Shown piece after piece: positions 17,679 to 61,600 of a stretch of DNA of 64,000 nucleotides. Numbering within the stretch: the first letter of the stretch is position 1; every line of letters begins with the position of its first letter. The stretch is taken from the NCBI RefSeq assembly GCF_006345805.1, contig NC_043021.1:20336001-20400000 (forward strand), written 5' to 3'. A program made the translations under genes and the position numbers. Source of the DNA: Octopus sinensis. Taxonomy: Eukaryota. Under the pieces are notes generated by a model. That model worked only from the letters and a program-made list of their open reading frames with translations. It did no database searches and had not been told where the DNA came from.

Positions 17679-20600
17679 TACGACGGGCTTCCTTCAGTTT
17701 CTGTTTACCAAATCCACTCACAAGGCTTTGGTCGGCCCAAGGCTATAGTGGAAGACACTTGCCCAAGGTGCCACGTAGTGGGACTGAACCCGGAACCACT
17801 TACTACACAGCCACTCAGGAAGAAATTAACAAAAATAAAAAGCGTTAAGAGCAATCTTCCAAAGACTGAGATGTCTAGCATCTTGCCATACTCAAGACGA
17901 CCCTTACTGTGCAGCAGAAATGTTAAGACCAATCTTTCTGGTGGCTCAAAGAACTTGTGGTGCCATGTAAAAGCACCCAGCACACACTGTAAAGTGGCTG
18001 GCATTAGGAAGGGCATCCAGCTGTAGAAATCATGCCAAATCAGACTGGAGTCTGGTGCAGCATGCTAGCTCTGGTCAAACCAGCCAACCCATGCCAACAT
18101 TGACAATGGACATTAAATGATGAAGATTCAACCAATATTTGGAATAATAATCAATGCGGCGACATGGATCAGTGTCTAACAAACAAGCGAGAGGTAAAAA
18201 AACAGACCACAGTTTTAACACTTTAGCACTGAAACCAGCCACATCAGGCTTAAATATTCTACCAGGTTTATGTTCAAACCAGCCTCTCATACCAATCCTA
18301 CAAGGCCATTCTAAAAATACCATATTTTGTTCTTACAAGTCAACATGGTATGTAATGTAAAGATGTATTGCAAATATTCAAGCATCATCTCTATCTTGCC
18401 AAATCCTGCTGCATTTCACATGGCTTTTGGCTCTTCAAAGTCATCTTGGTGTATAAGTTGATTTAGCTTTTTTCAGCTGTAAATAGGGGTCTGAAAAATT
18501 CAACTTGTATACCAGAAAATACAGTAAGCAATCACGTCGCTGACACCTTGAAGCTACTAGGATAATGCATGTTTAATTCAAAGCAGAGTGAATAAATAAG
18601 CATTACATTTGACAGTAATTTGAATGCTAAAGAGTTGTATTATAGTAATTTCTTTTTGAAAAAAAATGCATTTGAAGAATTTAAATTAAGCTTTAATAAA
18701 GATTCAGGGGAGGAGGTTTAAGCAAAAAAGAGGAAAAACAGAAAAACTCACTTGGCCTTCTTCTCGAGTTGAACTAAGAGTTCTCTGGTATTGCCCTGGA
18801 CTACCATTGTCTGAGTTAATGCTACTAGAAGTACTACTTGTTCGACCCTTTCCTATAGGTTCCGGAAGTGGACTACTGGAGTGATTAGCATATCCTAAAT
18901 TGTTTAACTAGAAAATGGGGGAAAAAATCAGGTTATTGCCATTGTCAACATTACAAATATGTAAAAATATACAAAAATCAGTCTTATTTTAATTTTGAAA
19001 ATCATGAAGAATTTATTAGATTATATTTGGTATCATTAAGCTAGTATTTCAAACTTCAATTAACACAAAATTTTGATGAAAAATTTTGATTAAGATCACT
19101 TCAAAATAAGGAATTTGTATCATAGAAAAAAGGGCAGTCTCAGGCGGATTGATATCAAAAATGATCAAAGATGCTACTGCCGTGATCACCACCACTGCCA
19201 CTATCACTGTTAGCATTTTTATGTTCTCTTTTTCCATGCTGACATGGATTGGATAAGTCTTCTGGACGTTATTTTCGGACACCAAACTATTTATTTTCAA
19301 GTAGCGTACTTTATTCTATGTCTTTGCATGCTAAACTGAACAGCAGGACATAAATGCCACTGATATCTAAATGTTGTCAATGCAAAGACATACAAAGGGC
19401 CTTCTGTAATTTTCCATCAACCAAATTTCACTTGTAAGGCATTGGCCAATCCAAGGCTTTATTAGAAGACACATAGCCAGGATTCCATGTGGTTGTAAAG
19501 GGCTCTATACAACATAGCCACACTTGTCTCCTTTTCAGACAGTGTATCTGGGTTTACATTATCCAATCTGTCATTCCATTTTTTTTTTAAGACAGTAGAG
19601 ATAATGGAAATGAGATTTGTTAGACACTCTTCCTAACGCCAATCACTCAAGTGTACTGGATGCTTTCTATTGGGTTGTCCGGAAAGTTCGTGCCGATTTT
19701 TAAAGGAAAGAAAATGGTCAATATATTTGCCATTACATTTTTAATCAACCAAATATGAACCATTTTGTTGCACAATGCGTCTCCCTCTTTCCTTTAACTT
19801 GAAAATACCCTCTTCCCAGAATTGAGGTAGTTTCATGGCAAAGAATTCATCAAGGTATCTTTTTACGTTATCCAAGGAATTGAAATTTTTACCATCAAGA
19901 CTATTTTGCAGAGACCTGAATAAGTGGAAATCCGAAGGAGCAATACCTGGTGAATACGAAGGGTGGGGTAACACTGCCCAGCCGAGCTGCAGCAATTTTT
20001 GTCTGGATTTCAAAGCATCAAGTGCCGAAAATGAAGTTTCTTATCTTCCATTTTAAAGGGTTACAGAATTAACACAGGTTATAGGAACATAAACCTTCTT
20101 CCACAAAAAGATAGCTTAAACTGTGCTCTAAATCGAGGTGTAGTCAAATCCTATTTTATGGACTCAACCATGTTCTAAAATAAATCGAAAATTAGGCTAC
20201 TATAAATCGGCACGAACTTTCCGGACAACCCAATAGATGGCACCATCACCAGAGAGGTCACCGAGTAACTTGCAAGACAAGATCCCTTCAAGTGAAGTGG
20301 GTTTATGCCAGGTGGTCAGAGTTTAGAGCATGATAGAGGGAAAGAAATAGCAGATGTACATGACTTACTGCAGTTGGAAAGGGAGAGGGGAGAGAAAGAG
20401 AAGATGGTGAAGAAGATAATGAAGTACCCCCTCAGGACCTTTTCCTTTTGAACGGCACACAATTTCTAGTTAACTAAACACTTTTAAACTTCATATAATG
20501 GTAGAATGTGTCAAAATAAAACATTTTTTTCTCTTGGCTTTCTTGAGAAAATTGTAATTTGTTTCTTTAACGTAGTTTAATTTTTCGAATTTTAACCAAT

Positions 20601-23600
20601 CCTATGCTCTCTTTTGAGCTAAAATCATTTGCTGCGTCTAAAACTGAGACAACATCCTGTAACTAACCCTAACCCTAAATTTTTTTTTATTAATTGTTAC
20701 GCGTGTAAAAAAAACTAAAGCAATAGAATTAAATTAATTTAACAATTAAGAAAAAAAAAATTAGGGTTAGGGGGGAGGTTTAGAGTTAGTTACAGGATGT
20801 TGTCTCAGTTTTAGACACAGCAAATGATTTTAGTTGAATGGGGGTAATCGATTGGTTAAAATTGCTGAAATGCTCGGATTTTCAGACGAAATATCTTACA
20901 AACTATAGAATTTTCTCAATAAAACCAAGAGAAAATGATGTTTTATAAACACATTCTACCAGTATATGTAGTTTAAAAGTGTTTAGTTACCTAGAAATTG
21001 TGTTGACATCTGCCATTCAAAAGGAAAAGATCCCACCCTCAAATTACAGGGAAGTGAAAGAGGTACAACCTGGAGAAATACTTACTGTGTGAGAAATACT
21101 GTTACAACGTTCTTTACCAATTGGATCTGGAAGCTTTGGTGATTGGTTACCACCTATAGAATTAGAATCCTCCTGCAAAATAATCAAACAAACCAAGAAT
21201 GACCAATTCCATGTTTTAGACAAAATACACAGGTTTCAAATTTTGGCACAAGGCTAGCAATTCTGGGGAAGGGAGTAAATCAATTACACTGACCCCAGTA
21301 TTCAACTGGTACTTATTTTATCTTGGAAGGCAGCGAGCTGGCAGAAACGTTAGCACGCCGGGCGAAATGCTTAGCGGTATTTCGTCTGTCGTTCAAATTC
21401 CGCCGAGGTCGACTTTGCCTTTCATCCTTTCGGGGTCTATAAATTAAGTACCAGTTACGCACTGGGGTCGATGTAATAGACTTAATACCTATCTCTGTCC
21501 TTGTTTGTCCCCTCTGTGTTTAGCCCCTTGTGGGTAGTAAAGAAATAGGTACTTATTTTGTCTATCCTGAAGGGATTAACAGCAAAGTTGACCTTGTTGG
21601 TATTTGAACTCAGAATGTAAAGATGGATGAAATGCCACAAAGCATTTTACCTGGCATGCAAATGATTCTGCCAGCTTCCTGCTCAGAGTTTTAGACTAAA
21701 ATATTAAAGATGATCAATAAGTTTAGTATCTTCATATTTAAACAGACCATATCCCACCCAAATATTCTTGTTTTCTTTTCTTGTCAATGGTCCTTCATCA
21801 TATGGTTTTAGGGTGCCCTGCTGTTCTTTCCCCTCACCATGTTGCCACTTTACTGCCACCATATAATTGCTTTTCCAATCTTGTCTGAGGACATGTCCGA
21901 TCCAGTTACAGAGTCTGCGTATTATTCCGTCACTGATCCTGTTGATGTTTCAATTGTCAGAATGAAGGAAATCTACCAAACAGTCAGAATGCCTTGAAAG
22001 TTTGCCCTCTCAATTCCCTTTCTGCCCACCATGAACTTACTGTAGATTTTCAAACTGAACAACGTTTCATCAATCTCACCAGTCTTGGAGTGTCAACAAA
22101 GAACAAGAACTAAACAATCCCTTCTCATTAAATAGCAACATAAGCAAAAAGAAAATCCGTGAGTTTGAGAGAATGTACTCTCTCTCTTTTACTCTTTACT
22201 CTTTTACTTGTTTCAGTCATTTGACTGTGGCCATGCTGGAGCACCGCCTTTAATCGAGCAACTCAACCCCGGGACTTATTCTTTTGTAAGCCAGTACTTA
22301 TTCTATCGGTCTCTTTTGCCGAACCGCTAAGTAACAGGGACATAAATACACCAGCACCGGTTGTCAAGCAATGCTAGGGGGACAAACACAGACACACATA
22401 TGCATACATATATACATATATACGACGGGCTTCTTTTCAGTTTCCGTCTACCAAATCCACTCACAAGGCTTTGGTCGGCCCGAGGCTATAGTAGAAGACA
22501 CTTGCCCAAGGTGCCACGCAGTGGGACTGAACCCAGAACCATGTGGCTGGTAAACAAGCTACTTACCACACAGCCACTCCTGCGCCTGTGTGTATATATG
22601 TGACACAGAAAGTCTGCGTGTGCATGTGCGTATTTGAAGGAATGTGCATATGTGTTTGAGAGAACGTGTTTATACATGTGCATGTGGAAGAATGCGTACT
22701 GTATTTTCCAGCACACAAGTTGAATTTTTGAGGCCAAAATTTAATGTGAAATGCAGGATTAGGAAGATAACGACATTGTTTTGGATGTTTATACTAAATG
22801 TTTATGTTATATACTGTGTTGTTTCGTATCCTGGAAAATCACCATCACCATCACCATCGTTTAACGTCCGCTTTCCATGTTAGCATGGGTTGGACGATTT
22901 TGACTGAGGGCTGGTGAACCAGATGGCTGCACCAGGCTCCAATCTTGATCTGGCAGAGTTGCTACAGCTGGATGCCCTTCCTAACGCCAACCACTCCGAG
23001 AGTGTAGTGGGTGCTTTTTATGTGCCACCGACCGGCATGGGGGCTAGTCAGGTGGTACTGGCAATGACCTCGCTCAAATTCTTTTTACACATGCCACCGG
23101 CACAGGTGAATGTAATGGTTTGAGAAAACATGTTTGTATGTTTGAGAAAGTGTGTACATGTGTTGGAAAGAAAGCGTGTATTATTTATTTTATTTTATTT
23201 TATTTTATCTAGTTTCAGCTCACGAGCTGTGGCCATGCTGGGGCACTGCCATTTAAATGAAATTAGACTGCCGTGACCAGGATTCGAACCTGGGTTACTA
23301 CGGCCACAACGTGGGGTCCTAACCACTAGACGATCACGGCCATTCGTCTAATTGTATATCTGTTTTGGCACCAAAACATTGTCAGAAAACAGAGCTGTTG
23401 CAGAGACTGTGTTGTAGCTTTATGTGCCTCATGGCATGGAGAGAACCAACCAATTACTTAACTTCCAAGAAACAAAGATAATGGTTAGTGCAGGAGATTG
23501 AGAGACTGTGTATATATTTTGGGAGAATGTGTATACATGTCACAGAGAATATGGCTGAATGTGTTTTAGAAAATGTGAACTTTCACGGGTGTACATGCTA

Positions 23601-26600
23601 CATATCGTTACTGTGTGTGCTTGACAGAGAATATCAATGCATGCTCTTCAGTCTTTTACTCGTTTCAGTCATTTGACTGTGGCCATGCTGGAGCACTGCC
23701 TTTAGTCGAGCAAATCAAGCCGAAGACTTATTCTTTGTAAGCCTAGTGCTTATTCTATCGGCCTCTTTTGCCGAACCGCTAAGTGACGGGAACGTAAACA
23801 CACCAGCATCGGCTGTCAGGCGATGTTGGGGGGACAAACACAGACACACAAACATACACATATATATATATATATATACATATATACAACAGGTTTATTT
23901 CAGTTTCCATTTACCAAATCCACTCACAAGGCTATAGTAGAAGACACTTGCCCATGGTGCCACGCAGTGGGACTGAACCCAGAACCATGTGGTTGGTAAG
24001 CAAGCTACTTACCACATAGCCACTCCTATGTATGTGTATAGGTGGTAACAAGTCGTATACATATTGCATTGCCCAAACACAGCCCCACACACACACACAC
24101 ACACACACACATACATACATACATACATACACACTGATCTACCAGAAAGAGAAGACAAAAGCTAAAACAGACAAAATGGTTTACCTTTTGATTTTGAAGC
24201 AACATTCCTTTGCCTTCATTATTTTCTAAATTATTACTACTTTGTGGTAAAGCGTTAGTTACAAATGCTGCTAAAGAATTATCACTTGATAAATTTAATT
24301 CTCTCTGTGCTGTCATTTCCTCTGTAAAAACAAAAAAAAAACAAAAATTATATAAAATATCATAAATATAAATAAAAACATGAGGGTGCCTGGCCTAGTG
24401 GTTAGGGTGTTGCACTCATGAACACATCAACTCGTTAACATTGTCATCATCATTTTAACCCTTTTGATACCAACCTGGCCAAAACTGCCTCTGGCTCTGT
24501 AGTACAAATGTCTTGTTTTCATAAGTTCTGAATTAAAATCTTCCACCAAACCTTGGTCACAATTTATGTTCCCAATACTAGCTTAATGATAACTAAGTTA
24601 TTTTACTAAATTCTTTGTTGCTGATGCCAGTGCCGCCTCGACTGGCTTCCGTGCCGGTGGCAAGTAAAAAGGCACCAATCTGACCATGGCCGTTGCCAGC
24701 CTTGCCTGGCACCTGTGCAGGTGGCACGTAAAATGCACCAATCCGACCGTGGCTGTTGCCAGCCTCGCCTGGCACCTGTGCAGGTGGCACGTAAAAAGCA
24801 CCCACTACACTCACGGAGTGGTTGGCGTTAGGAAGGGCATCCAGCTGTAGAAACACTGCCAGATCAGACTGAAGCCTGGTGCAGCCTTCTGACTTCCCAG
24901 ATCCCCGGTCGAACTGTCCAACCCATGCTAGCATGGAGAACAGACGTTAAACAATGATGATGATTTAAAATAAATTGAATGAAATACAGAGCATCTCAAA
25001 ATAAATACGGTAATGAAAGGGTTAACATCTACTTTCTAATAAGTCAGAAGAAATTTGTGCAGGTGGATTTTCTACAGTTCGATGACCTTCCTGACGCCAA
25101 TATTCACCTGATTCCAAGTAAGGTACTATGCCCCGTGACCAGACATGTTTACATGGAAGACTAGAAACAGAGGACACTGCTTCCATGATGGTGACATTCA
25201 TTCACAACTATCACGTGAAGTCAAGGCAAAGAAACAGTCACACACACACATATGATGGGCTTCTTTCAGTCTACCAAATCCACTCTCAGGGCTTTGATCA
25301 GCGGAGGGATGAAGTGGAAAAAAACTTGCCACACAGTGGGACTGAACCTGAGATCAGGTGGTTAGAAAGAAAACTTCTTGCCACACAGTCATGCTTTGCA
25401 CATGTAGGCTAATTATAGAGAATTTTTTTTTACAGGAAAAACAAGTTCCCCGCTCCTTTTAATTCTCTCATTCACACATTATCCTAGCTCCATGATAAAC
25501 ACACCATTTACTTCTACTACCATTTACTTTCCATTATCTGACAGCTTCCTACTTGCAAGCTATCTCTTTAATGAGACAGCAAATAAAAACAAAGCTAATT
25601 ATTACATGCAGATTGTTGTTGTTATTATTATTATTATTATCAGAATCAGAATCAAAATCGAAATCGATCAACATCAATGGAAATTGTAGCTGTGATACCA
25701 GTGCCGGTGGCACTTAAGCGAACCATCCAAATGTGGTCGTTGCCAGCGCTGCCCCGACGGGCACGTAAAAAGCACCATCCGATCGTGGCCGTTTGCCAGC
25801 CTTGCTTGGCACACATGCCGGTGGCACGTAAAAAGCACCATCCGGCTGTGGCCGTTTGCCAGCCTCGCTTGGCACACATGCCGGTGGCACATAAAAAGCA
25901 CCATCCGGCTGTGGCCGTTTGCCAGCCTCGTCTGGCACCCATGCCGGTGGCACGTAAAAAGCACCATCCGATCGTGGCCGTTTGCCAGCCTCGCCTGGCC
26001 CCCATGCCAGTGACACGTAAAAGCACCATCCGACTGTGGCCATTTGCCAGCCCCGTCTGGCACCTGTGCCGGTGGCACGTAAAAAGCACCCACTACACTC
26101 ACGGAGTGGTTGGCATTAGGAAGGGCATCCAGCCATAGAAACATTGCCAGATCAGAACTGGGCCTGGTGCAGTCTTCTGGCTTCCCAGACCCCAGTTGAA
26201 CCGTCCAACCCATGCTAGCAAGGAAAGCGAACGCTAATGATGATGATGATGAAAGACTGATAAAAAAAAAGAAAAGAAACAGTTATATTGATGTACATAT
26301 AAAAGTGACGCAGTTGGAAAATGGTATTTGTTGGTAATGGAAAGTGAAGGAAAGAAGGTAAGTCATAGTTAATTATCCTCTCAACTGATAATAGAACAAC
26401 TTTGTCTCACACAATCAAACATTTTATAGTACATAATCATTTCAATTATCTGGACATTCTTCAAAATAGCTAAGTATAAAAGAAACACAAAGGGAGGTTA
26501 AGCTCCAAAAAACAAACTTGCATTGCAAAGGAAATAATGCTGTCTGATAATAATGGATAATGCAAAATTTGTTTTATGTAAAAGTATATGTACACACACA

Positions 26601-29600
26601 CACACACACTTTGTTGTTTGTTTGGCCTTTTCAAAGAGTGCCATTTAGATATATTTTACACATCTAGCACAAAAAAACAAACTTGAAAATGTTGATGGTA
26701 CACACACACACACACACACACATCATCATCATTTAACATGCACTTTTCCATGCTTGCATGGGTCAGACGGAATTTTTTGTCCCAGCAGATTTTTTCCACA
26801 GCTGGATGTCCTTCCTGTTGCCAACCCTCACCCATATCCAGGTTGGCGTAATTTGAACTCAGAACGTAACAGCAGACAAAATACTGCTAAGCATTTCGCC
26901 CAGTGTGCTAACGTTTCTGCCAGCTCGCCACCTTTTTAAGGGATATCTGGCAGCTATTCATGGCAGATTACTCAACTCCATAGAAGCCCTCTCTTTCAAA
27001 ATTCTAGCTGGAGTTTTTATTAGTTTTCTTCCTTACTACAACTAGATAAAATTCATGTAGGGCATGGCCCATTTCGTGAGCTTCTGTACTTTCCATCTAC
27101 TCAGTTTCATTCACAAGGCTTGGATTAATATCAGGGTAGGGTAGAAGACATTTGGTCAAAGAACTGTGCAGTGGGATTGAGCTTAGAATCACATAATTGC
27201 AGAGCAAAACTGTACAGTTTAAGCTTGCAGCCATGGCCAATGAAAGACTCTGTGGTCACTCAATTTACTAGAAATAGCAGCTAAATTCTTCCAAATGACA
27301 TCTTGAATAAAGATAGGTAGCATGCCATTCAGTAAGTCCCACAAGCCATAGTTTGTTCAAGATACTTAAACTGAGAAACCCCTAAAAGGCAGGATGGTCG
27401 CAGCTGGAATACCGTTGCAGTTTGATTGAACAAGGGTTACACAACAACAAGTAGGATGTGTAGGGGACACATGCACAAACTTAGCAATGGATTTAGAAGT
27501 TAGTTAAGAGGTAGGCTTTTAAGTCCATATGAAATATTGTAATTATACACATAAAAAAACAGAAAAAAAAACCAATATATTTTAAAAAATAACTTACGTT
27601 CAACATGTGCAAAAGCACAAAATGACCCACGAGGGCAGAAACTATTTTGTACCATATCATTACATTTTGTTGATTTATAAATCTGCAACAGAAAATCAGA
27701 AAATTCTATGTAAGTATAAGAGACAGAGCAAAGATTCAGCTTCAAATACATTTTAAAACCGTGTCTTGATAGTTTTTCTTTCTTGTTTGTAAAGTCAATC
27801 ACATATGTGTGTGTGTGTGTGTGAGTGTTCTTTTACTTGTTTCCATTACTGTGTTGTTTCCTCTACGGTGGGGCTACAGCCTGAAAGAGTTTACTCGATC
27901 CCTTACTTTTAAGGGGTGGAGGCGCAATGGCCCAGTGGTTAGGGCAGTGGACTCGCGGTCATAGGATCGCGGTTTCGATTCCCAGACCGGGTGTTGTGAG
28001 TGTTTATTGAGCGAAAACACCTCAAGCTCCACGAGGCTCCGGCAGGGGATGGTGGTGATCCCTGCTGTACTCTTTCACCACAACTTTCTCTCACTCTTAC
28101 TTCCTGTTTCTGTTGTACCTGTATTTCAAAGGGCCGGCCTTGTCACTCTCTGTGTCACGCTGAATATCCCCGAGAACTACGTTAAGGGTACACGTGTCTG
28201 TGGAGTGCTCAGCCACTTACACGTTAATTTCACGAGCAGGCTGTTCCGTTGATTCGGATCAACCGGAACCCTCGTCATCGTAACCGATGGAGTTCTTCCA
28301 TCCACTTTTAAGGGATTTTTACCTTTTAACCAACAGATTTTAAAAAATAATTTTTTGTAACTAAATTGCATAGTGCCAAGGACTCCAAATTTGCCATCAA
28401 GATGTAGGACAAGATACTGTGATAGCCTGGGCTTCAGAGGTCCACAGCTCTTCAATATCCTCCTGAAGGACCTCAGAGAACTGCATGGGGTGGCTGCAGA
28501 TGTTTTCAAAATAAAGCTGGACCTCTTCCTGTCAGGTGTCCCAGATGAACCAACTTCACGGCAAGAGGTGCAGATGAGGGCAGCTGCATCAAACTCTCTC
28601 ATGCACCAAATGGCAATTGCTAAAAAGCATTCGTGAAGTAAAATCATGTAGCAACACCAAATGGCATGGCCACAGCTCGTGAGCTGAAACTAGATGAAAT
28701 GAAAAAAAATACTTTCAAGCTTCGGACACTGGTAGAATGTGTCATATAAAACATGTTTTACTCTTAGCATTTTTGAGAAAAACTTATATTTACGAAGTTA
28801 TTTCACGTTAAAGTTCTCGTATTTCGGTAATTTCAACCAATCAATGACGTGTATTCAGCTGAATAAAATTACTGCCGTTGTTTGTCAACAACAACTATCG
28901 GTGGTGTATTTTTTGTTTGTCACTGTTATTTATAACATCGTTCATGCGTTTGTACTGGTTTTAAGGTGTTAGGGTTTTAGGGTTAGAGTGTTAGGATTGT
29001 CATAAATAACAGTGATAAACAAAATATACACCGCCGGAAGTTCTTGTTGACAAACAACGGCAGTAATTTTATTCAGCTGAATACACGTCATTGATTGGTT
29101 GAAATTACTGAAATAGGACAACTTTAACGTGAAATAACTTCATAAATATAAGTTTTTCTCAAAAATGCTAAGAGTAAAAGATGTTTACAAATGGCAGGAG
29201 ACTTTGGGGTAGACCAAGAGCAAGATGGTTGGATAACATCCATAGTCTCAGTTGGTCATACTTGGGAATCCGACCAGAAAGTGGCTGCTTCTGATAGGAC
29301 CATAGGGTGGAGGAGCCTAAGGACTCTACTCTATGACTGGCAGGAGAGACCTAGGGGCAGACCAAGAGCAAGATGGTTGGATAGCATCCAGTCTCAGCTG
29401 GTCACACTTGGGAAGGTCTAATGACAGTTGCTTCTGACAGGATCCTTGAAAGAAGGTACATGAGGACTCTACCCTTAAGACTTACCCAAGAAAAGAGGGT
29501 GGAGAAGATGAAAGGATGGATGAAAATGCTAATTTCCTATAGTATGGAGGTTACATTACTGTAATGGTTAAGTACTTATTTGCATTTCATTCAAAATATG

Positions 29601-32600
29601 TTCAGAAAACGGTTAGAAAACCAGTAAGTCCATACCTCTGGATGAAACTGTTGTTCAGTTCTAGTGTGACAATAAGAACAATTATCTCCATTTTCACATT
29701 GAGCAGGATCTCCCCAATCATCACCATGTTTAACATTAGGACATGGCGTTGACCTGCAATATATAGGAAAGTTATTAATTTATAATGGATATTACAAAAC
29801 ATTGAAATAGAGAAACAACGAATGAAAGAACAAAACAAATTATAAGAGTTTGAAAATAGTTAAAATACAACCAAAAAAAGCCCCCCCCCCTCCGGGTCAT
29901 AGTGCTAGTATAGTGTTAAAAGCATTGAAAAGTATTAGCAGCAGGCGATGGTCGCTCAGTATTCAAATTTGAAAGACTACAGGAGAATATGTTGACCGGA
30001 CATTTGTTGAATATAGAACATTAAGATTACGCGAATCAAGAAAGCAGTTAGGAATTTTACACATCGCCCCATCCCTAACTGTAATAAGTTAGCCAGGCCA
30101 CAAGGCAAAATGCCTATGATGTTTGTAGATTCTCCTCCCAGAGTAGTGAAAGAGATGAAGTTGATGCCAAGTTTAAACATCTGCTGCAAAAATCAATGGG
30201 TAAGGAGTCTGGTTGAAATGATTAGAACAGAACCTATTTTTCAATGAACGTCAGTGCAACCCGTGTGTGTGTGTGTGTTGGAATGATTGTTTTTCCAGTT
30301 CAGATAAACTTCCTTACAACTATAAACAGAGTGAAAGCCAATGAGGGACTTTCTGCAAGGTCTCTCAAGATGCTAGAAATAGCAGCTGTACATGAGACCA
30401 CCATCTTGTTACAGCCGAAACATGATACGCAGATGTAAAGGCTCACTTATTGGGACAGTGATTGTATCATATACCCACTTATGATGACATCTAATCATAC
30501 ATTCACACTACTGTGGCCTCTAACAACATAATGACCCACAAATTTACTCTAAACTTTACACATCAATCTCCAATAACCTACTTACTATTATTTCTAAGTA
30601 GACATTGTATCACATAACATTTAATATTACAAAAAGCCAATGTAAAAGCTTCAGGCTTTTGATCTGCTATAAATAACAACTGAAACCTCATCCTAGCATG
30701 TTAGGAAAGGACACGCTAGATAATGTAGTCACACATGCCTTTAAAATGATGGATTGGTCATGGCTGGAACACCATAGATCATAAGTCTAATTGATCAAGT
30801 CTGATCTAGAACTGTACAGTTGAATGCTGTAGTTCACTGATATTGCCACCTATCCATTGCACTCTTGAGCAAAGAGTGTATAACACAGCTTGCTCCAGTT
30901 TCTATATCTTGCCTTAAAACAGGTTCTATTGTTACTTAATGGTTGAGTGGTTAACTATAAAAATTGCATCAAGTACCCAAATGTTTCGTAAAAAAAAAAA
31001 AAGCAACATTATCACACCTACATGAACAATACATATGTAAATAGAGCACTGGTTTTCCCTCTGACTAATACACCAAAAATATAAAAGGAAAAAGCCCAAA
31101 ATCTTGAAGAAAACTAAGCAAGAGATATCATCGTTGTTTAACGTTCACTTTTCCATGCCTGCATGGGTTGGACAGAGTTTTGAGGCAGATTTTCAACAGT
31201 TGGATGCTCTTCCTGTCACTAGCCTCTATCTGTTTCTAAGCAAGGTAATATTTTCCCATGGACAGACATGTTCTTGCAGAATATGGGAAATGATGACACT
31301 GCTTGTATGACAGTGACACTCATTTACAACTATTACACGATATCAAGACAAGGAGACATGAACACACACAAGCACATACATATGTAATAATAATAATAAT
31401 AATGAAATTATTGTATACAGTGCTCAGGTGCACCACAACTTGTCAGAAAGTGCGTATAAAGTGTATGCAGTAATGTGCAAATGTCTGGAAAGCGAACAAT
31501 GTATGAGTCAGATACATGCATGTGTGTGTATGGAGGGGAGGAAATCAGGTGTAGCGTTGGTGAATCTCAGAAAGCATGGAAGTTTTGAAGGATGCAGTGC
31601 TCCGACAACTAACAACCGATGCCGGCAGTTTGTTCCATGCTTCAGCAACTCTCAGCGTGAAAAAATGTTTCCGAAAGTCATGGGAGCTGTGCTGTTTTCT
31701 TACTTTGTAAATATGTCCACGGGTGTTAGACAGGTGGAGTTTGAAAAGGTGCTCAGAGTTATTGTTTGTAAGATGGTTGATAATTTTATGGGTGTCTGCC
31801 AAGTCAGCTGCCGGACGTCGGTGTTTCAATGTGTCCATGCCCAGGGAAGTAAGGCGTTCAGAATATGGCAAATGCCTAATGTGATGGGCTTCTTTCAGTT
31901 TCTGTCTACTAAATCCACTCACAAGGCTTTTTAGTCTACCCAAGGCTACAGCGGAAAACATTTGCCCAAGGTGCCATCAGTGGGACTGAAACCAGAACCA
32001 TATAGTTGGGAAGCAAACTTCTTAATACACTGCCATACCAACACCTGGTAACATTTTAATGTCAACAAGAAACAGCAGATCCAGTAAAAGTTTTGAACAA
32101 AATACCAAGTGACATTTAGTTATGCCCTTTTAACCCTTTCGTTACTGTATTTATTTTGAGCTGCTCTGTGTTTCTTTCAATTAATTTAAATATAACAAAG
32201 AATTTAGTAAAATAACTTATTTATTATTCAGCTAATGTTAGGAACATAAATTGTGACTAAGGTTTGGTGGAAGATTTTAATTCAAAACTTATGTAAACAA
32301 GACAGAGCCAGATCCGGTTTCAGCCAGGCTAGTAACGAAAGGGTTAAATTTCTTTCTAAATTAGAAACCTGTCAAGGTCAACTTTACTTTTCATTATTCA
32401 TTTACATTATTTATTCATCCATCCATATTTTCCACCCACTATTCCAGGGAAGGATGTGGGGTTAGATTCCTCAGGCATTTCCTCCATCGGGTCCTATTAG
32501 ATGCAACTTTCTGACTGGATTCCCAAGTGTGACAAACTGAGATTATGAAAAGCTATTCATTCATCATCATCATCATTTAATAGTCATTGTGCTGGTGCCA

Positions 32601-35600: not shown

Positions 35601-38600
35601 AAACATTTACTGAGCACATTGGTTCTCAGCTGGGGTCCATGCAACAAAAGAGTAGATTGGGGATCCACAAAAGTATTTTAAGAGATCCTGGAAAAATTTT
35701 GTTTTAGAGGTAAGTATTGGACAGTGATGTTTTTTTCTCTGACATTTTACATAATTCAACCTACACAAATTGTGTGGAAAACAAAATAGGAATTTTGAAA
35801 GAAGTTACTATAAAACAAGTTTTAACCCTTTCGTTACTATATTTCTGACCAAATTACACCCCTTATGTGTTTCAATTAATTTCTAACGTAATCATAAATT
35901 TAGTCTGGTTTCATTAAACAACTATAACTTTTTTATTTATCGATATATTAATCTGATTTTTGGAAGATAATTTAATGAAATATTCTCAACCAATTCTATA
36001 CTATAATTTTTGTCACAAAGTGACTCTATTTGCAGGTAGATACAGGTAAATTCCACAAAATATAAAATTATTAAAATTTTGTTCAAACATCGCTATAGAA
36101 AATATTAGCTAATATTCAATTGGGTATACAACAAAATTTTACGATAGAATTTGTTATTCTGGGTAACTTTCTGATACCCATAATAATATTTATGGCAAAA
36201 TAGGCCTTAATTTCATTTAAGGTTGTGGGAAATAACAAACTATCCTTTCTTTCGTTTTGTTTACGTTTAGCGAAACGGTTCGTTTTCGCTGTAATGAGTT
36301 CAAATAGGCTCATTCGAAAAAGTAAATAGAAATAGCCTAAGGCTTTACCCTTCTGGGAAAGTCTGTGGCTTGGTCCAGTTTCTGCAGAAAAATCACAGAA
36401 AGAAACAGTTTTTAAATTTTCACTCCATTCAGGTGCTAATTCATTTTCTTTATCGCTATCGGAGATCTCAGATTCACTGTTTTCACTTTCGGAAAATGAA
36501 ACATCAGATTCATTATCAAATACCATGTGCTTTTTTTTTTCAGTCATAGAGTTAGATTTATGAAGGTCTTCAGTAGAAAATCCTTCGAATTCTGACTCGC
36601 TGCTTGATATAATGAAATTCGTATCCATTTTTTGTCAGAATTACAAATTTTGAAAACACAATAGGAACAAATTTCGGAAAAAAATCTCCCAAAATTCACG
36701 GAATTAAAATTACACTTCGATTATTGTACAAAACTGTAGTTGAACTGTTTACGAAGTATAATACGTGTTTTCACGAATGTACTGAAGAGATTTGCTCTGA
36801 TATTCTCATTTAAATATGAATAGGTAAATTCGGGCGGCTTGGTTTCATAAACCAAAATTTTTTTCGGGCGGCTTTGGGCGGTTTGGTAACGAAAGGGTTA
36901 AAACATCAAATTGCTTTGAGGGTCCACCCGAATAAAATAGTAATCAAAGGGGTTCATAGATAAAAAAAAAAATGGTTGAGAACACCAGTTTTAGTACATA
37001 TGTTAACCAATTTCAAAAAACAGGCTCCATTTACTCAAAATATTGTACAATATATTACATGATACTGTGCAGTATTCCCAGAATTTCTGAAAGCCAGATA
37101 AAAGATCCAGTACTGAGTACATACATGTATGCATGTGTATGCGTGTGCCATAAAGCAAATAAGCATAAACCAGGAAATCTTTAAAATGTGTTTTTGGATG
37201 AGAATCCCTTCCTAGTGTGATGTTTGTCAACCAGGGAGAACATTGTGATCTTTGTCATTTATACGCCATGGAAACCTGGTAACCAGCCCTACGAGTCCTA
37301 GGGAGTGAGACAGTAATATCCAGGGATTGATGATGAAGATGATGATGATGCTATTTGTTGTGCCTGAGTGAGTAGCATGGAAAATCTACACTCTTTTACT
37401 CTTTTGCCTGTTTCAGTCATTTGACTGCGGCCATGCTGGAGCACCGCCTTTAGTCATGCAAATCGACCCCGGGACTTATTCTTTGTAAGCCTAGTACTTA
37501 TTCTATCAGTGTCTTTTGCCGAACCGCTAAGTTACGGGGACGTAAACACACCAGCATCGGTTGTCAAGCGATGTTGGGGGGAACAAACACAAACACACAC
37601 ACACACATATATATACATATACATATTATGACGGGCTTCTTTCAGTTTCCGTCTACCAAATCCACTCACAGGGCTTTGGTCGGCCCGAGGCTATAGTAGA
37701 AGGCACTTGCCAAAGGTACCACGCAGTGGGACTGAACCCGGAACCATGTGGTTGGTAAGCAAGCTTCTTACTACAGAGCCACTCCTGCGCCTATAGTCAA
37801 TCTTCGTCATCACAAATGTAGCAAACCAGTGACTGGCCTGTTGGAAATTATTGTAATCAATGACACTTTCTTCAACAAATATGATATAAATGAAAGGAGT
37901 TTAATTAATTCTGTTGGCTCATACATTTTCTTTTGATACGTCTTATGAAGAAAGGCTGAGGACGCTCGACCTTTATTCTCTAGAAAAACGCCGCCGCCGT
38001 GGTGATCTCATTCTCGCTCACAACATCATAAGCGGAAAGTGTAACCTCTCAAAAGAGCTGTTCTTCACTCCTGCTCCAGAGCGTCGGCTGCGGGGTCATT
38101 CCGAAAAGCTCTACCTGCAACGATTTCATCTCAATCGAAGGAGAGGAGCTTTCTCCATCCGGGTTGCGGATCCGTGGAACAAGCTGCCAGACGAGATGGT
38201 GAAGATGCCGACGACCGCTTTGTTCAAAGTCTCCCTTGACCTCAAATGGCCTGAACTCTTTACATGAACACCACCCTGTACTTAACTCCATGTCCCCCTA
38301 CATGGCCTTGCTATTTGCTTTTGAGCCAAATTAACTAACTAACTAACTATAGCTCTCCCACTTGCTCACCAACCAACGTAGAACTCAAAGGTTACAGGCT
38401 AAATTGATGTCAGTATGGGAAAAAAAAATCAATACGAAACCAAAGATAAAAACTCAAGGGAGCTTCTATATGGTCACTCAACTTGCTAGAAATAGCAGTG
38501 TAATCTACGTCAAAAATCACACGTTGGATAATATGGTACAAGGGAAAAAGATGGGATGATCATAGCTGGAATGCCTTTGAGCAACAGGTCTGCTTAATCA

Positions 38601-55800: not shown

Positions 55801-58429
55801 TACAGGGACATAAACACACCATCATCGGTTGTCAAGCGATGGTGGGGAGGACAAACACAGTCACAAAGACACACACACACACACATATACGACAGGCTTC
55901 TTTCAGTTTCTGTCTACCATATCCACTCACAAGGCTTTGATCAGCCTGAGGCTATAGTAGAAGACACTTGCCCAAGCTGCCACGCAGTGGGACTGAACCC
56001 AGAACCATGCGTTGGGAAGCAAGCTTATTATCACACAGCCATGCCTGTGCCTATGTAAACACAAGGTATTTTGCCTGTCTCTGTCTGAAGATTCTGCCAT
56101 CCACTCCCCAGTAATAAGCATAATAAATGATAATAAAGAACAGAGTAACAAACTTAAGAGGCATATTTTTTTATCATTTACTTGTTTTAGTCATTAAACT
56201 GTGGCCATGCTGGGGTACCATACTGGAGAATTTTAGCCAAACGAATCCACCCAAATGCTTTGTGTGCCTTGGGTATGTGTTGTGGTTTGTCATGATGATC
56301 TTATTGTTACTGTATTGAAAGTGTTTTACATAGGATGTGTGCGGTGCTCAGTAGTGCGATTTTCTGTATGTTATATATATTTGTAAGTCCTGGTGTTTTT
56401 GTTATAACACCAGACAAAAAATGTTAGCAGCATTTCATCCATCTCTATGTTCCGAGTTAAAATTCCACCATGTCTGACTTTGTCTTTCAGAGTCGATAAA
56501 ATAAGTACTAGTCATGCACTGGGGGTGATGTAATTAACCAGCTCCCTTGCACCAAAAATTTCAGGCCTTCTGCCACAAGTAGAAAAGGTTATTGTTATTA
56601 TTATTATTATTCACAATTATACACCTCTTAACTAAATGTTTTTTTTTTCTCTCTCCACATTCTTGATATATTTATTTCTTTATAATCTAGTCTTGAAATG
56701 TAATTTACTGAAACTAAATTCTTGACCTTTAAGGTTAGCAGTTCAGCATCTTAGCTTCACTGGCCACTGTCTGACTAGCTGTCTGCTTTTCCATTGGGAA
56801 GCATTTCTCGTTGTGATTGAGTTATATAAATAAGAAGTTTCCCCCTCTCCTAAACAGGTCTATCAAGTCACCTATTCACGTCTTCAGTCACGTTTATATG
56901 TGTATTTGGCAAAAGCTGGCAAAGGTCACAGAAGAGACACAACCTTCCCCTATATAATTGCTCTAATTTCTCCTGTTAGCATTTAAGAGGCTATATTCTT
57001 AAAAGTATTAAAATCCAGACTATGAAGAAAAGGAAACTCGAGTGATGGCCTGCATCAGCAACAATCAGCCCATAACAGATTTCGATAGGTTGGAGGACCC
57101 TTAACCACTAACCCTTTAGTGTTCAGATTATTCAATCAAGCATAATGCCTATTGATTCCCATTTATTTGAATTAATCATGTATTATCCCATATCTTCAAG
57201 GGCTTGATGGTGTAATTACTTAATGCAGAATAACATTGTAGGGTAGGTGTGAGAGCCTGGATCCGGTCAGTTTGAACATAAAACAGATTAACTACTTTGG
57301 CCAGATATGGCCGGTTTAAATACTAAAGGGTTAAATCTTTCATCTCCCATGACAACTGAACTGATGACAAAGGCATTCAGATGAACAGAGTGGTGATGTA
57401 ACAGTCACTACTACTGACAACAACAAGCTAGAATAAAGAAAAATAATTAAATACAGAATTTCCTGTTTGGCTTATTAAGGGAGGAAGGAGAGTAGCCATG
57501 ACATTTTCAGGCTCATTGAGATCAACATGGTTGATGGTCATCTTGAATTTATTTGTGTCAACACTGACCTAGACTAGGTTGAGCTACCTCCAGCAAGTAA
57601 ATTTGCAGTGGCTGTGTGGTTAAGAAGCTTGCTTCACAGCCAAGTGCTCTTGGGCATCTTAGACAAGTGTCTTCTACTATAGCTCTGAGCCAACTGGTGC
57701 CTTGCAAATGAATTCATGCAACTGAAACTGTATGGAAGCCCATCGTGAATATACAAACAGACTGACATATATATCTCCTTTCTACAATAACCACAAGGCT
57801 TGAAATTTGGCAGAAGAGGTGGCTAGTCGGTTATAGTGATCCCAGTGGTAAACTGTACATATTTTACCAAATCCGAAAGGATGAAAAGTCAAAGTTGACC
57901 TCGGCAGAATTTGAACTCAGAATATAAAGCCAGAAGACTATATGTGTGTGTGTGTGTGTGCGCTTGTCAAGCCACCATGATCATAACCATTAGTTGACAA
58001 CAGGTGCTGGTTTGTTTACATGCCGGTAATTTAGTGGCTTGGCAAAAGAGACTAATAGAATAAGTATCAGACTTTAGAAAGAAAAACACATAAGTATTGG
58101 GGTTGATTTGTTTGACTTAAATACTTTGAGGCAGTGCCCCAGCATGGCCACGTTCCAATGACTAAAACAAGTATAAGATAAAAGAAAGTTAAGTTGTCAA
58201 CCCTTGACAGAAACATCACAGTTTCCAGTGACAGCTTATGTACAGCATAATCCTTTGATTATTATAAACAAAATCATTTGTGCAGATTGTTCAGCAAGAA
58301 CTTACAGAACTCTCACTCATCATCTATGACAAGAGAGTCCAACCTGGTGGGAGTTAAGACAAACTTAGCAGCTATTTCAAATAGGTAGATGTCCATGCAG
58401 AGGCTGACAGTTGTTCTGTTTGCATACTC

Positions 58430-58620: not shown

Positions 58621-61600
58621 AGCCAGCCCCGTCTGGCACCTGTGCGGGTGGCACGTAAAAAGCACCCACTACACTCATGGAGTGGTTGGCGTTAGGAAGG
58701 GCATCCAGCTGTAGAAACTCTGCCAGATCAGACTGGGCCTGATGCAGCCTTCTGGCTTCCCAGACCCCAGTTGAAACCATCCAACCCATGCCAGCATGGA
58801 AAGCGGACGCTAAATGATGATGATGATGAAGACCCACAATTCTGTCTAATGCTCAAAACGGCCCTGAAGCTATGGAAGTTAAAATCAGTGGACCACCAAC
58901 TAATCACACTGACGTGAGTTCAAACCTTACAGCAGTTTTGTAGTGAACTCCAAGATGTGACACAATTTGCAGTTGTGACTATCAAAAGACTTCTATCAAC
59001 GTGCAAAAAGACATCATTTATAAGACACTATATACTTCATACAGTAATTATTCATGTATAATACGCACTTTTGTCATGAAAATCCTGCTCCCAACTATGT
59101 GGTTCTGGTAGGTGGAAACTGAAAGAAGCCCATCATATATTTGTGTGTGTGTGTGTGTGTGTCTTTGTGTCTGTGTTTGCTCCCCACCATCATTTGACAA
59201 CCAGTGTTGGTATGTTTATGTTCCTATAACTTAGCGGTTTGGCGAAAAGGACTGATAGAATAAGTACCATGCTTACAAAAAAAAAAAAAGTACTGGGGGG
59301 TCGATTCATTTGACTAAAAATTCTTCAATATCGTGTGCTCCAGCATGGTCGCAGTCTATTGACAGAAACAAGTAAAAGAGAGAAAAAAAAAGAATGTGCA
59401 ACTTCCTCCATGTTCACTTCACAGTAGCAGCAGATGCATTTTTACAACCTACATTGCTAAAGGTCAAAGGTCACTTTCCAATTTCTTTTTTTCTTTTATT
59501 TAGGATACCTTTATTTAGGACTGTGGCCATGCTGGGGTACCACCTTGAAGGGTTTAGTGAAATAAATCAATCCCAGTAATTTTTTATAAGTCAGACTTAT
59601 TTTATTGATTTCTTTAGCTGAACTGCTAATTCATGGGAATGTGAACAAACCAACACTGAATGTCAAGCAGTGGTAGGAGCAATCACAAACAGACACACAC
59701 ACATCAGGCTTCTTTCAGTTTCCATCTACCAAATTCACTCATAAGGCTTTGGTTGGCCCAGGGCTATAGTAAAAGACACTGGCCAAAGCTGCCATAGAGG
59801 GGAACTGAACCTGGAACTATGTGGTTGAGAAGCAAACCTCTTACCGCAGAGCTATGCCTGCTCCTCCTTAACACACAACCTGTGCCATCTTACCACACTG
59901 CCATGCCTGCACCTATGTAAATTATTTTACGCAGCAACTGCAACAAATCTGGCTTAACACACCTTTTCCCAGCCATCTTAACCCTAAAGAAAAATCAGTG
60001 CATCTCTCTAATTTTCAGCAGTTTGCTATTTATTGAGTAGAAATCTTTTCCTGGTGACAAGTTTGAGGACACCAAATGTTATAAGAATAATAATTAATGT
60101 GCGAACAAAAAGTTGCTTAAAATAAATGCAGTAAGAATAATTACTAACTACTGCATTATTTTAAGCAACAACCTTTTGTGCACACATGTACAATCCAGAT
60201 GAAATGGTGCACAAGAGATGTTGTTCAGGGATTTTATTAGTTATAATTACAAGTGCACAGTTTGCTAAGGTGCAACCATGGCTGTATAAGAAGTCTGCTT
60301 CTCAACTACATCATTCCAGGTTCAGTCCCACTGCATTGCACTTTCGGCAAGTGTCTCAGAATGCAACTATTTGCAGTGGGGATAAGACTGAAACATCTGG
60401 CAAAATGCAGATCAATTCAACCCATTCCAATAGTAATAAAAATGATGATGATGATGTGATAATGCTACTTCATGGCTGAATGCTTAATGGCAGAACAGAC
60501 ATACGAAACTGAAAAGTAAATATTTGCTCCTCAAATTTCCAAACATTATTCTAACCATATCAGAATTTACAAAACACAATGTAAACTATCTCTTCATAAA
60601 TGTAATTATATTTTAATTATTAAAACTTTTTATCGTTGGTCTTTTACTTGTTTCAGTCATTTGGCTGTAGTCATACTGGGGCATTTGCCTTGAAGGAGTT
60701 TAGTTGAACAAATCAACTCCAGGACATTTTTTTTTAAAGTCTAGTACTTATTTTATCAGGCTCTTTTGCTGAACTGCTAAGTTATAGGAACATAGATATA
60801 GTAACAGATGTCAAGCAGTGGTAGGAGACAAACACAAAAACACTCATAAAGGGATATTATGTATGTATGTAAATATGATATTTATTTATTTATTTATCAT
60901 TATAATAATATATATTTATTATCATTACTAGCTTAAGTACCAGTCATTGCTCAGAAGTTTAAAGAATATTAACCCTTTAGTGTTCAGATTATTCTACAAA
61001 CATAATGCCTATTGATTCCCATTGATTTGAATTAATCATGCATTATCTCATATCTTCAAGATCTTGATGGTGTAATTACTTAATGTAGAATAACATTGTA
61101 GGGTAGGTGTGAGGGCCTGGATCTGGTTTGTTTGAAAATAAAACAGATTAAATATTTTGGCCGGATATGGCCAGTTTAAATACTAAAGGGTTAAAGGAAA
61201 TAAATATATTTATTCTGACAAAAAGGATATTTTTAGAAAAATTCTATCAGATGTCGTGAGTATAAACAAAGTTATTAAAACAAATCCTGAAATCACATGA
61301 AACAATAAAAGTGAAACTAGAGTGTTATGAAAAGTGAAACTATTATATCGCTGCAAAAAAAAAAAAAAAGGGCCCGTATAGTAGGGGCTATGAACAATTA
61401 TTTGAATAATTCATGTTGATATCTCTAACTTATGTCACGAGAATATTGAACTTTTCTTTTCCTTAAAACCTCCTGTTTCTTTATCACAATTAAAAAGCAT
61501 TTCAGAAGAAAGTGAAAAAACAAAACCAAAGTAATTTCCAGACAGCCAAATTTAGTACAGATTTATCCAGCGGTTTGGCCAGGCATAGATGAAATACACA

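Follow-up and report, generated by a model that had tools for sequence, protein, structure and literature searches.

Among described systems, the closest to the locus considered here, a tRNA-His gene of Octopus sinensis that is followed after a short trailer by the 3' tail of a long interspersed element (LINE), are two short interspersed elements (SINEs) of passerine birds. The locus lies in a 64,000-nt stretch of O. sinensis DNA (NCBI RefSeq assembly GCF_006345805.1, contig NC_043021.1, positions 20,336,001 to 20,400,000), referred to below as the window. Like it, TguSINE1 and PittSINE join a tRNA head almost directly to a LINE tail, in their case of CR1 type, with a hairpin and a terminal microsatellite, and the hairpin of that tail is the binding site of the reverse transcriptase (10.1101/081950). 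A hairpin followed by a terminal microsatellite is likewise found in CR1-type LINEs and their SINEs more generally, a likeness to the octopus tail that is one of architecture (10.1101/081950). The avian families are, however, multi-copy, with target-site duplications and diagnostic substitutions, whereas the octopus locus is known from one copy, shows no duplications, and retains a 14-nt trailer of genomic type between head and tail. A further parallel is provided by chimeras of the U6/L1 type, made by L1, in which a small RNA of RNA polymerase III (Pol III) forms the 5' part and a truncated LINE the 3' part in the same orientation, the whole being bracketed by target-site duplications. The layout at the octopus locus is the same; it differs in lacking duplications and in that its LINE is of the stem-loop and microsatellite type. 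Chimeras of LINE-1 with non-coding RNAs are described in a preprint (10.1101/2025.02.02.635956). The octopus tRNA-derived SINEs OK, OR1, and OR2 (Ohshima and Okada 1994, as cited in PMC4824008 and PMC4758252) come from the same host group. Four octopus SINE-like families treated below, SINE-A and three others, have tails shared with a LINE, which is common among SINEs of this sort, and it is in this respect that we liken them to OK, OR1, and OR2. We know of no tRNA-His head reported for these three SINEs.

We read the octopus locus as an ordinary, severely 5'-truncated LINE insertion beside a resident tRNA-His gene in an intron of unkempt, and give this reading a probability of roughly 60%. 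An initial annotation, made from the window sequence alone, had proposed the joined tRNA gene and LINE tail as a possible intermediate in the birth of a SINE. ARAGORN, Rfam, and the sequence itself confirmed the position of the tRNA gene and all of the coordinates in that annotation; they also bore out its anatomy of a tRNA head, a LINE 3' tail, and an A-rich microsatellite, the tail being a module with both of its hairpins that ends in (AAAAT)5. The gap between gene and tail, put initially at about 14 nt, is exactly 14 nt (23268–23255). The elements of the locus are as follows:

23269–23340, minus strand: tRNA-His(GTG) gene, 72 nt (ARAGORN; Rfam RF00005, 54.5 bits)
23255–23268, minus strand: 3' trailer of the tRNA-His gene, 14 nt, gtctaatttcattt (from the sequence)
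23207–23254, minus strand: module from the 3' untranslated region (3' UTR) of a LINE, 48 nt (match to LINE 3' UTR, fold, and pair counts)
23184–23206, minus strand: (AAAAT)n microsatellite, the end of the LINE fragment (Tandem Repeats Finder, TRF)
23167–23173, minus strand: TTTCTTT block, +96 to +102 counted past the tRNA gene's end and ahead of the first run of four T residues (T4) (list of T runs)
23125–23128, minus strand: first T4 downstream of the tRNA gene, at +141 (list of T runs)

On the minus strand, the tRNA-His gene is followed in order by the trailer gtctaatttcattt (also given as GTCTAATTTCATTT), AAATGGCAGTGCCCCAGCATGGCCACAGCTCGTGAGCTGAAACTAGAT, and (AAAAT)n; the tail has the form CAGCTCGTGAGCTGAAACTAGAT(AAAAT)n, and the A/T-rich sequence AAATAAATAAT comes after the microsatellite. 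Homology to the LINE begins at AAATGGCA (23254) and extends over 48 nt. Within it, 23207–23238 (minus strand) is identical at 32 of 32 positions to 28664–28695 (plus strand), precisely as first annotated; the identity was initially seen over 32 nt only because the comparison copy near 28.6 kb has lost 11 nt within hairpin 1. A 29-nt core of the tail occurs exactly twice in the window, against none expected from 100 shuffles. Both hairpins of the fragment are intact: hairpin 1 at approximately 23251–23230 (GGCAGUGC/CCCA/GCAUGGCC) and hairpin 2 at 23229–23216 (CAGCU/CGUG/AGCUG), the latter followed by AAACTAGAT. The terminal microsatellite has a period of 5 nt and 5.0 copies at 100% matches (TRF, 23184–23208). 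A perfect microsatellite and a 32/32 identity would fit a recent insertion.

The LINE origin of the tail can be followed through the comparison copy, which is the following feature:

28364–28711, plus strand: 5'-truncated LINE copy of the same family, with the C-terminus of ORF2 (the second open reading frame, ORF), 3' UTR, hairpin 2, and a GAAAT/A-rich tail

The frame of its ORF2 C-terminus runs from 28364 to 28636, with the stop codon at 28634–28636, and the encoded peptide is 70% identical to a 109-aa product from a cephalopod-like contig. A profile built from these two peptides recovered 1266 relatives. Its best match is a 984-aa protein (P0002) with the Pfam endonuclease (Exo_endo_phos) and RVT_1 domains; the window peptide is 63% identical to residues 892–973 of this protein (82 residues), which upholds the earlier assignment of the 28.6-kb piece as a LINE tail. 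No domains beyond endonuclease and RVT_1 were found by Pfam in the LINE proteins. By these protein matches, the tail module is the 3' end of a LINE family of the endonuclease plus reverse-transcriptase (APE+RT) type. Directly after the ORF2 stop, the contigs L001, L002, L004, and L005 continue with GGCRGTGCYCCAGCATGGCCRCAGC, a brief palindromic stretch, AAAC, and finally a short tandem repeat, which in L002 is (TTAAA)n.

The module folds as two adjacent hairpins. Hairpin 1 is nearly invariant, its variable positions being unpaired bases, and hairpin 2 occurs in several variants: the LINE subtype has CAGCU/AGCUG, the main SINE CAGUC/GACUG, and L001 CAGCCC/GGGCUG. In an alignment of 11 sequences, 88.9% of cells are paired, against no more than 40% with the partners slid, and two of the hairpin-2 pairs are changed on both sides, that is, in compensation.

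The module is frequent in the surrounding DNA. For this count we used L006, 90.7 kb of the same chromosome (CM016883.1), of which the window is positions 18891–82890, reversed; the window sequence matches CM016883.1 positions 20,336,001–20,400,000 with 100% identity. The first 24 nt of the module occur 9 times in the window and 15 times in L006, mostly at the end of a SINE-like repeat of ~400 nt that we term SINE-A. Some 15 copies per 90.7 kb point to retroposition machinery that is very active here, and the presence of the module on many repeats indicates that the LINE already has abundant non-autonomous partners. Three SINE copies are close to the tRNA-His gene:

23650–24030, minus strand: SINE-A copy ending in the tail module, with hairpin 2 CAGUC/GACUG (copies elsewhere in L006 are 84–91% identical)
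22190–22585, minus strand: second SINE-A copy with the same tail module, in the same intron (sequence comparison)
22838–23108, minus strand: copy of another SINE-like repeat, termed SINE-B, ending in (GGTGAT)n, immediately downstream of the tRNA-His locus (a copy elsewhere in L006 is 90% identical)

At least three more SINE-like types, distinct from SINE-A, share the tail module (1880–1903, 58130–58153, 59521–59544) and have hairpin-2 variants of their own. The 48-nt two-hairpin module is thus common to one LINE family and at least four octopus SINE-like families, which suggests that SINE-like repeats have captured it repeatedly. The head of SINE-A was not recognised as a tRNA by Rfam even at a permissive threshold; A/B-box-like motifs, judged by eye only, suggest a tRNA origin.

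Hairpin 1 shows a peculiarity in the LINE copies that bear ORF2 sequence. Both of these copies (28655–28674 in the window and 12130–12160 in L006) have 11-nt deletions in this hairpin, in different registers (AAATGGCA|TGGCC and GGCGGTGCC|ACAGC). Hairpin 1 is retained in the SINE copies and in the tRNA-adjacent tail; either it is easily deleted, or one LINE sublineage can do without it.

Tails of the LINE subtype, in which hairpin 2 is CAGCTnnnAGCTG followed by AAACTAGA, number five in the 90.7 kb. The tRNA-adjacent tail is one of them: its hairpin 2 and AAACTAGAT match the LINE subtype exactly (CAGCTCGTGAGCTG), where the SINE types in the window read CAGTCAAATGACTG...AAACAAGT instead. Two of the five carry ORF2 remnants, one carries part of the 3' UTR, and besides the tail at tRNA-His there is one other tail-only copy (L006 8409–8422, outside the window), which ends in AAACTAGAT(AAAAT)2 and has no tRNA near it. 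Retained lengths range from ~580 nt of ORF2-matching sequence plus tail down to ~32 nt plus microsatellite, and this variation among the five indicates that severe 5' truncation is routine for the subtype. Tail-only LINE copies are common here; since they occur away from tRNAs, no special mechanism is needed, and together with the abundance of SINE partners they favour an ordinary truncated insertion as the simpler account.

The possibility that the LINE targets tRNA genes was considered and rejected, as only one of the five LINE-type tails and none of the ~14 SINE tails in L006 lie near a tRNA. Retrotransposons that do target tRNA genes, such as the TRE elements of Dictyostelium, are found at a fixed distance from them.

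In the reading that we favour, a resident tRNA-His gene would have received the insertion of a LINE with a stem-loop and microsatellite tail. Target-primed reverse transcription would have started on A/T-rich DNA behind the T-rich tRNA trailer, with the (AAAAU)n end of the RNA presumably priming on the A/T-rich site AAATAAATAAT; the (AAAAT)n and the final 48 nt of 3' UTR, including both hairpins, would then have been copied before synthesis aborted. The resulting juxtaposition is most likely a by-product, SINE-like in appearance yet single-copy. The fragment resembles ordinary 5'-truncated ("dead on arrival") LINE copies in being co-linear with the LINE 3' end, in ending in its family's microsatellite, and in having copies of varied truncation nearby; in itself it differs from them in nothing, and only the location of the octopus copy is unusual, in the orientation of a Pol III gene and 14 nt past it.

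Three observations weigh against a simple insertion. First, under uniform placement a tail would fall within 20 nt downstream of a given tRNA gene, in the same orientation, with a probability of ~0.2% (from 15 modules per 90.7 kb). Second, the LINE part begins at the first base of the module common to all SINE partners, right after a trailer that ends in UUU, and such a junction is equally expected from a template switch onto the pre-tRNA. Third, no target-site duplication was recovered around the 48-nt LINE piece, where the 5-nt TAAAT is the best direct repeat (equalled in 310 of 500 shuffles). Many LINE clades with tails of this kind make short target-site duplications or none, so this last absence counts only weakly against a truncated insertion.

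The tRNA-His(GTG) gene itself is the sole tRNA called by ARAGORN in the window, and no second tRNA was found in the 90.7 kb of L006. The gene and its flanks are unique in both; the repeated portion of the locus is the tail only. The gene has a full cloverleaf with anticodon GTG and with A73, and its B box (GGTTCGAATCC), as internal Pol III promoter, is perfect. It had been described initially as an unmodified tRNA head, a description contradicted by a C28·A42 mismatch that breaks the 28-42 pair of the anticodon stem, every other cloverleaf feature being present in the ARAGORN drawing. Among homologues, compared indirectly through the codons of protein-space matches, position 28-42 is T28-A42 in 114 and C28-G42 in 6; the combination C28·A42 appears in none of the ~120 homologues in this indirect comparison. 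Because the two positions change in compensation (T-A or C-G) among the homologues, the pair is conserved, and it is broken in the gene of the window. An aberrant second copy in P0153 also has C28 opposite A42, along with one further substitution. A single mismatch is insufficient to call the gene a pseudogene; by its sequence, it is slightly imperfect and not pristine.

An unlikely alternative, and the one that survives best, makes the locus a template-switch chimera. On reaching the 5' edge of a tail module, of a LINE or a SINE, the enzyme would have switched to a primary pre-tRNA-His ending in ...CAUUU, and copied it to its 5' end, in which case the tRNA gene and trailer would themselves be a retrocopy. 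For PittSINE, it has been proposed that CR1-type reverse transcriptases switch templates to tRNA, as an origin of new SINE heads (10.1101/081950). At the junction, a trailer with the TTT end expected of primary transcripts made by Pol III abuts precisely on base 1 of the module, and the low prior of a chance adjacency (~0.2%) also favours a switch. The absence of CCA at the junction means that the template would not have been a mature tRNA. The C28·A42 mismatch fits a copy free of selection; as a single change, however, it is a weak sign of decay. A target-site duplication bracketing the tRNA and tail together was looked for and not found, the best direct repeat around this unit being 5 nt (400 of 500 shuffles gave one as good), or 8 nt with one mismatch allowed (239 of 500 shuffles). 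Tail-only LINE copies, moreover, occur here in the absence of any tRNA.

The alternatives in which the locus is itself a SINE in the making depend on how far Pol III transcribes beyond the tRNA gene. From the absence of T4 near the gene, the initial annotation had derived a read-through RNA of ~215 nt. It was right that the first T4 is 141 nt away (23128–23125), and the derivation was overstated, since TTTCATTT and TTTCTTT come first. The list of T runs contains no oligo(T) terminator near the tRNA-His gene and no T4 over the 141 nt, with TTTCATTT only: the trailer gtctaatttcattt contains two blocks of three T residues (T3) that together form TTTCATTT (23262–23255). Past the end of the gene, T3 runs on the minus strand begin at +7 and +12 (TTTCATTT), +96 and +100 (TTTCTTT), and +120.

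On its own, T3 is inactive with human Pol III, whereas T3VT2 and T2VT3 motifs, as well as native T3CCT2 and T3AT3CT2, terminate transcription partially; native TTTCGTTT is present in the flank of one tested human gene (Orioli et al., PMC3141230). Between 12 and 20% of the tRNA genes in human lack a T4 within 50 bp, and those with distant canonical terminators resemble the octopus gene in having no close T4 and split T-rich elements in the trailer; partial read-through gives them long 3' trailers (PMC3141230). These rules were measured on human Pol III and may not be those of the octopus enzyme. By analogy, TTTCATTT and TTTCTTT resemble partial human stop signals and may act as such here. As split T-rich elements stop human Pol III partially, the equation of a missing T4 with read-through is too simple; absence of T4 is insufficient to predict it. 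Any read-through at the octopus locus would probably be partial and end mostly near +100, giving an RNA of ~175 nt and not ~215 nt. For a truncated insertion beside a resident gene, this would mean that Pol III stops largely at TTTCATTT, that the remaining transcripts end mostly at TTTCTTT (+96), and that few carry the tail.

In the predicted fold of a 216-nt read-through RNA, the acceptor and T arms of the tRNA and both hairpins of the tail stay separate modules. As both hairpins are in the tail, such an RNA would carry the presumed recognition element of the reverse transcriptase. The fold also pairs GTCTAATTTC of the trailer with GAAACTAGAT of the tail. Trailer GTCTAATTTC (23259–23268) is complementary at 8 of 10 positions to tail GAAACTAGAT (23207–23216, minus strand), with a rough chance probability of ~0.3.

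It is on these transcripts that an active proto-SINE would draw, a reading that we consider improbable. Pol III would read through the trailer into an RNA with the LINE hairpins and microsatellite, from which the LINE machinery makes, or can make, daughter copies. Several features are as such an element would need them: the B box and cloverleaf are intact, 141 nt pass before any T4, both tail hairpins are intact and predicted to fold independently of the tRNA, and the same tail serves several abundant SINE families in the octopus genome. Partial read-through of split T-rich signals by human Pol III (PMC3141230) points the same way. Against this, TTTCATTT and TTTCTTT should reduce or shorten read-through, and the RNA would have extra sequence past the microsatellite; the junction itself is single in the 90.7 kb and absent from 255 protein-space matches, both of these tests being of low power.

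The searches behind the last point were as follows. No second junction of tRNA-His and tail is present in the 90.7 kb of L006. The octopus genome comprises ~2.7 Gb, so that one copy per 90.7 kb rules out only families of ~100,000 or more copies. Junction-spanning stop-to-stop frames used as protein queries gave 255 matches, all of them plain tRNA-His genes of other invertebrates and none extending into the tail, a weak test because octopus is apparently represented by annotated proteins only. In the assembly collection, neither the 43-aa and 48-aa frames across the junction nor a 179-aa ORF had an exact match, and a scan of metagenome DNA with the T arm and tail core returned 38 bacterial chance matches, none of them tail-like. 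Nothing in these tests, all of them weak, indicates that the locus has multiplied.

A related idea, to our minds a long shot, is that the locus is a newborn simple SINE near the single-copy stage, whether by insertion or by template switch, with a leaky split-T trailer, a working promoter, the tail of a currently active LINE, and daughter or sister copies, few in number, in O. sinensis or O. vulgaris. Should the junction turn out to have transcripts and a handful of copies, it would offer a rare snapshot of the first step in SINE formation: its head would still differ hardly at all from the tRNA gene, and SINEs with the same tail have expanded greatly in this genome. Read as a truncated LINE insertion, the locus illustrates instead how readily chance can produce the architecture of a SINE. 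Derivation of the tail fragment from a SINE copy, or its arrival by gene conversion or recombination, seems very improbable, for although LINE and SINE copies have the module's first 24 nt in common, hairpin 2 and AAACTAGAT match the LINE subtype and no SINE type in the window, and the fragment has the clean microsatellite end of retroposed copies.

The tRNA-His locus is housed in the gene for RING finger protein unkempt, much of which falls within the window; the gene was identified from orthologue matches of concatenated ORFs around the locus and from the Pfam domain zf-CCCH_11. Host gene and tRNA-His gene are on the same strand, and the exons bounding the intron are 24388–24185 and 21184–21083. 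The intron also contains the two SINE-A copies and the SINE-B copy listed above. The corresponding features are:

21185–24184, minus strand: ~3-kb intron of unkempt that houses the tRNA-His locus (isoform X1 of O. sinensis unkempt, P0395, in tblastn)
49910–49635, 33947–33807, 29755–29630, ~27730–27581, 24388–24185, 21184–21083, 18907–18743, 16102–15890, 6337–6110, and 3673–3437, minus strand: unkempt exons (tblastn)

Degenerate units of ~22 nt (GTTTGAGAGAAYGTGT...) flank the tRNA block and surround the neighbouring SINEs (23118–23182, 23493–23576, 22651–22674, and 22160–22176), and may be the remains of an old minisatellite that received several elements. The more specific proposal that a whole 310-nt block was inserted into a minisatellite of 22-nt period was dropped, as there is no TRF array and the units are too degenerate.

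Other repeats are present elsewhere in the window. At 25650–26260, a SINE-B-like repeat in which a unit of ~60 nt has been amplified internally gives rise to long spurious ORFs of 145–179 aa on both strands and in several frames. Of the ORFs at 31545–31961 and 19744–20040 (minus strand), for which Pfam gave no matches, one resembles by eye a C-terminus from another LINE family (LPYSERL...LKHRR...FF..RV...WN.LP) and the other that of a mariner-type transposase. Finally, a 170-aa ORF at 36116–36628 (minus strand) contains a PiggyBac-type transposase domain (DDE_Tnp_1_7, E = 2.5e-8) and appears to be either a transposon remnant or a domesticated fragment.

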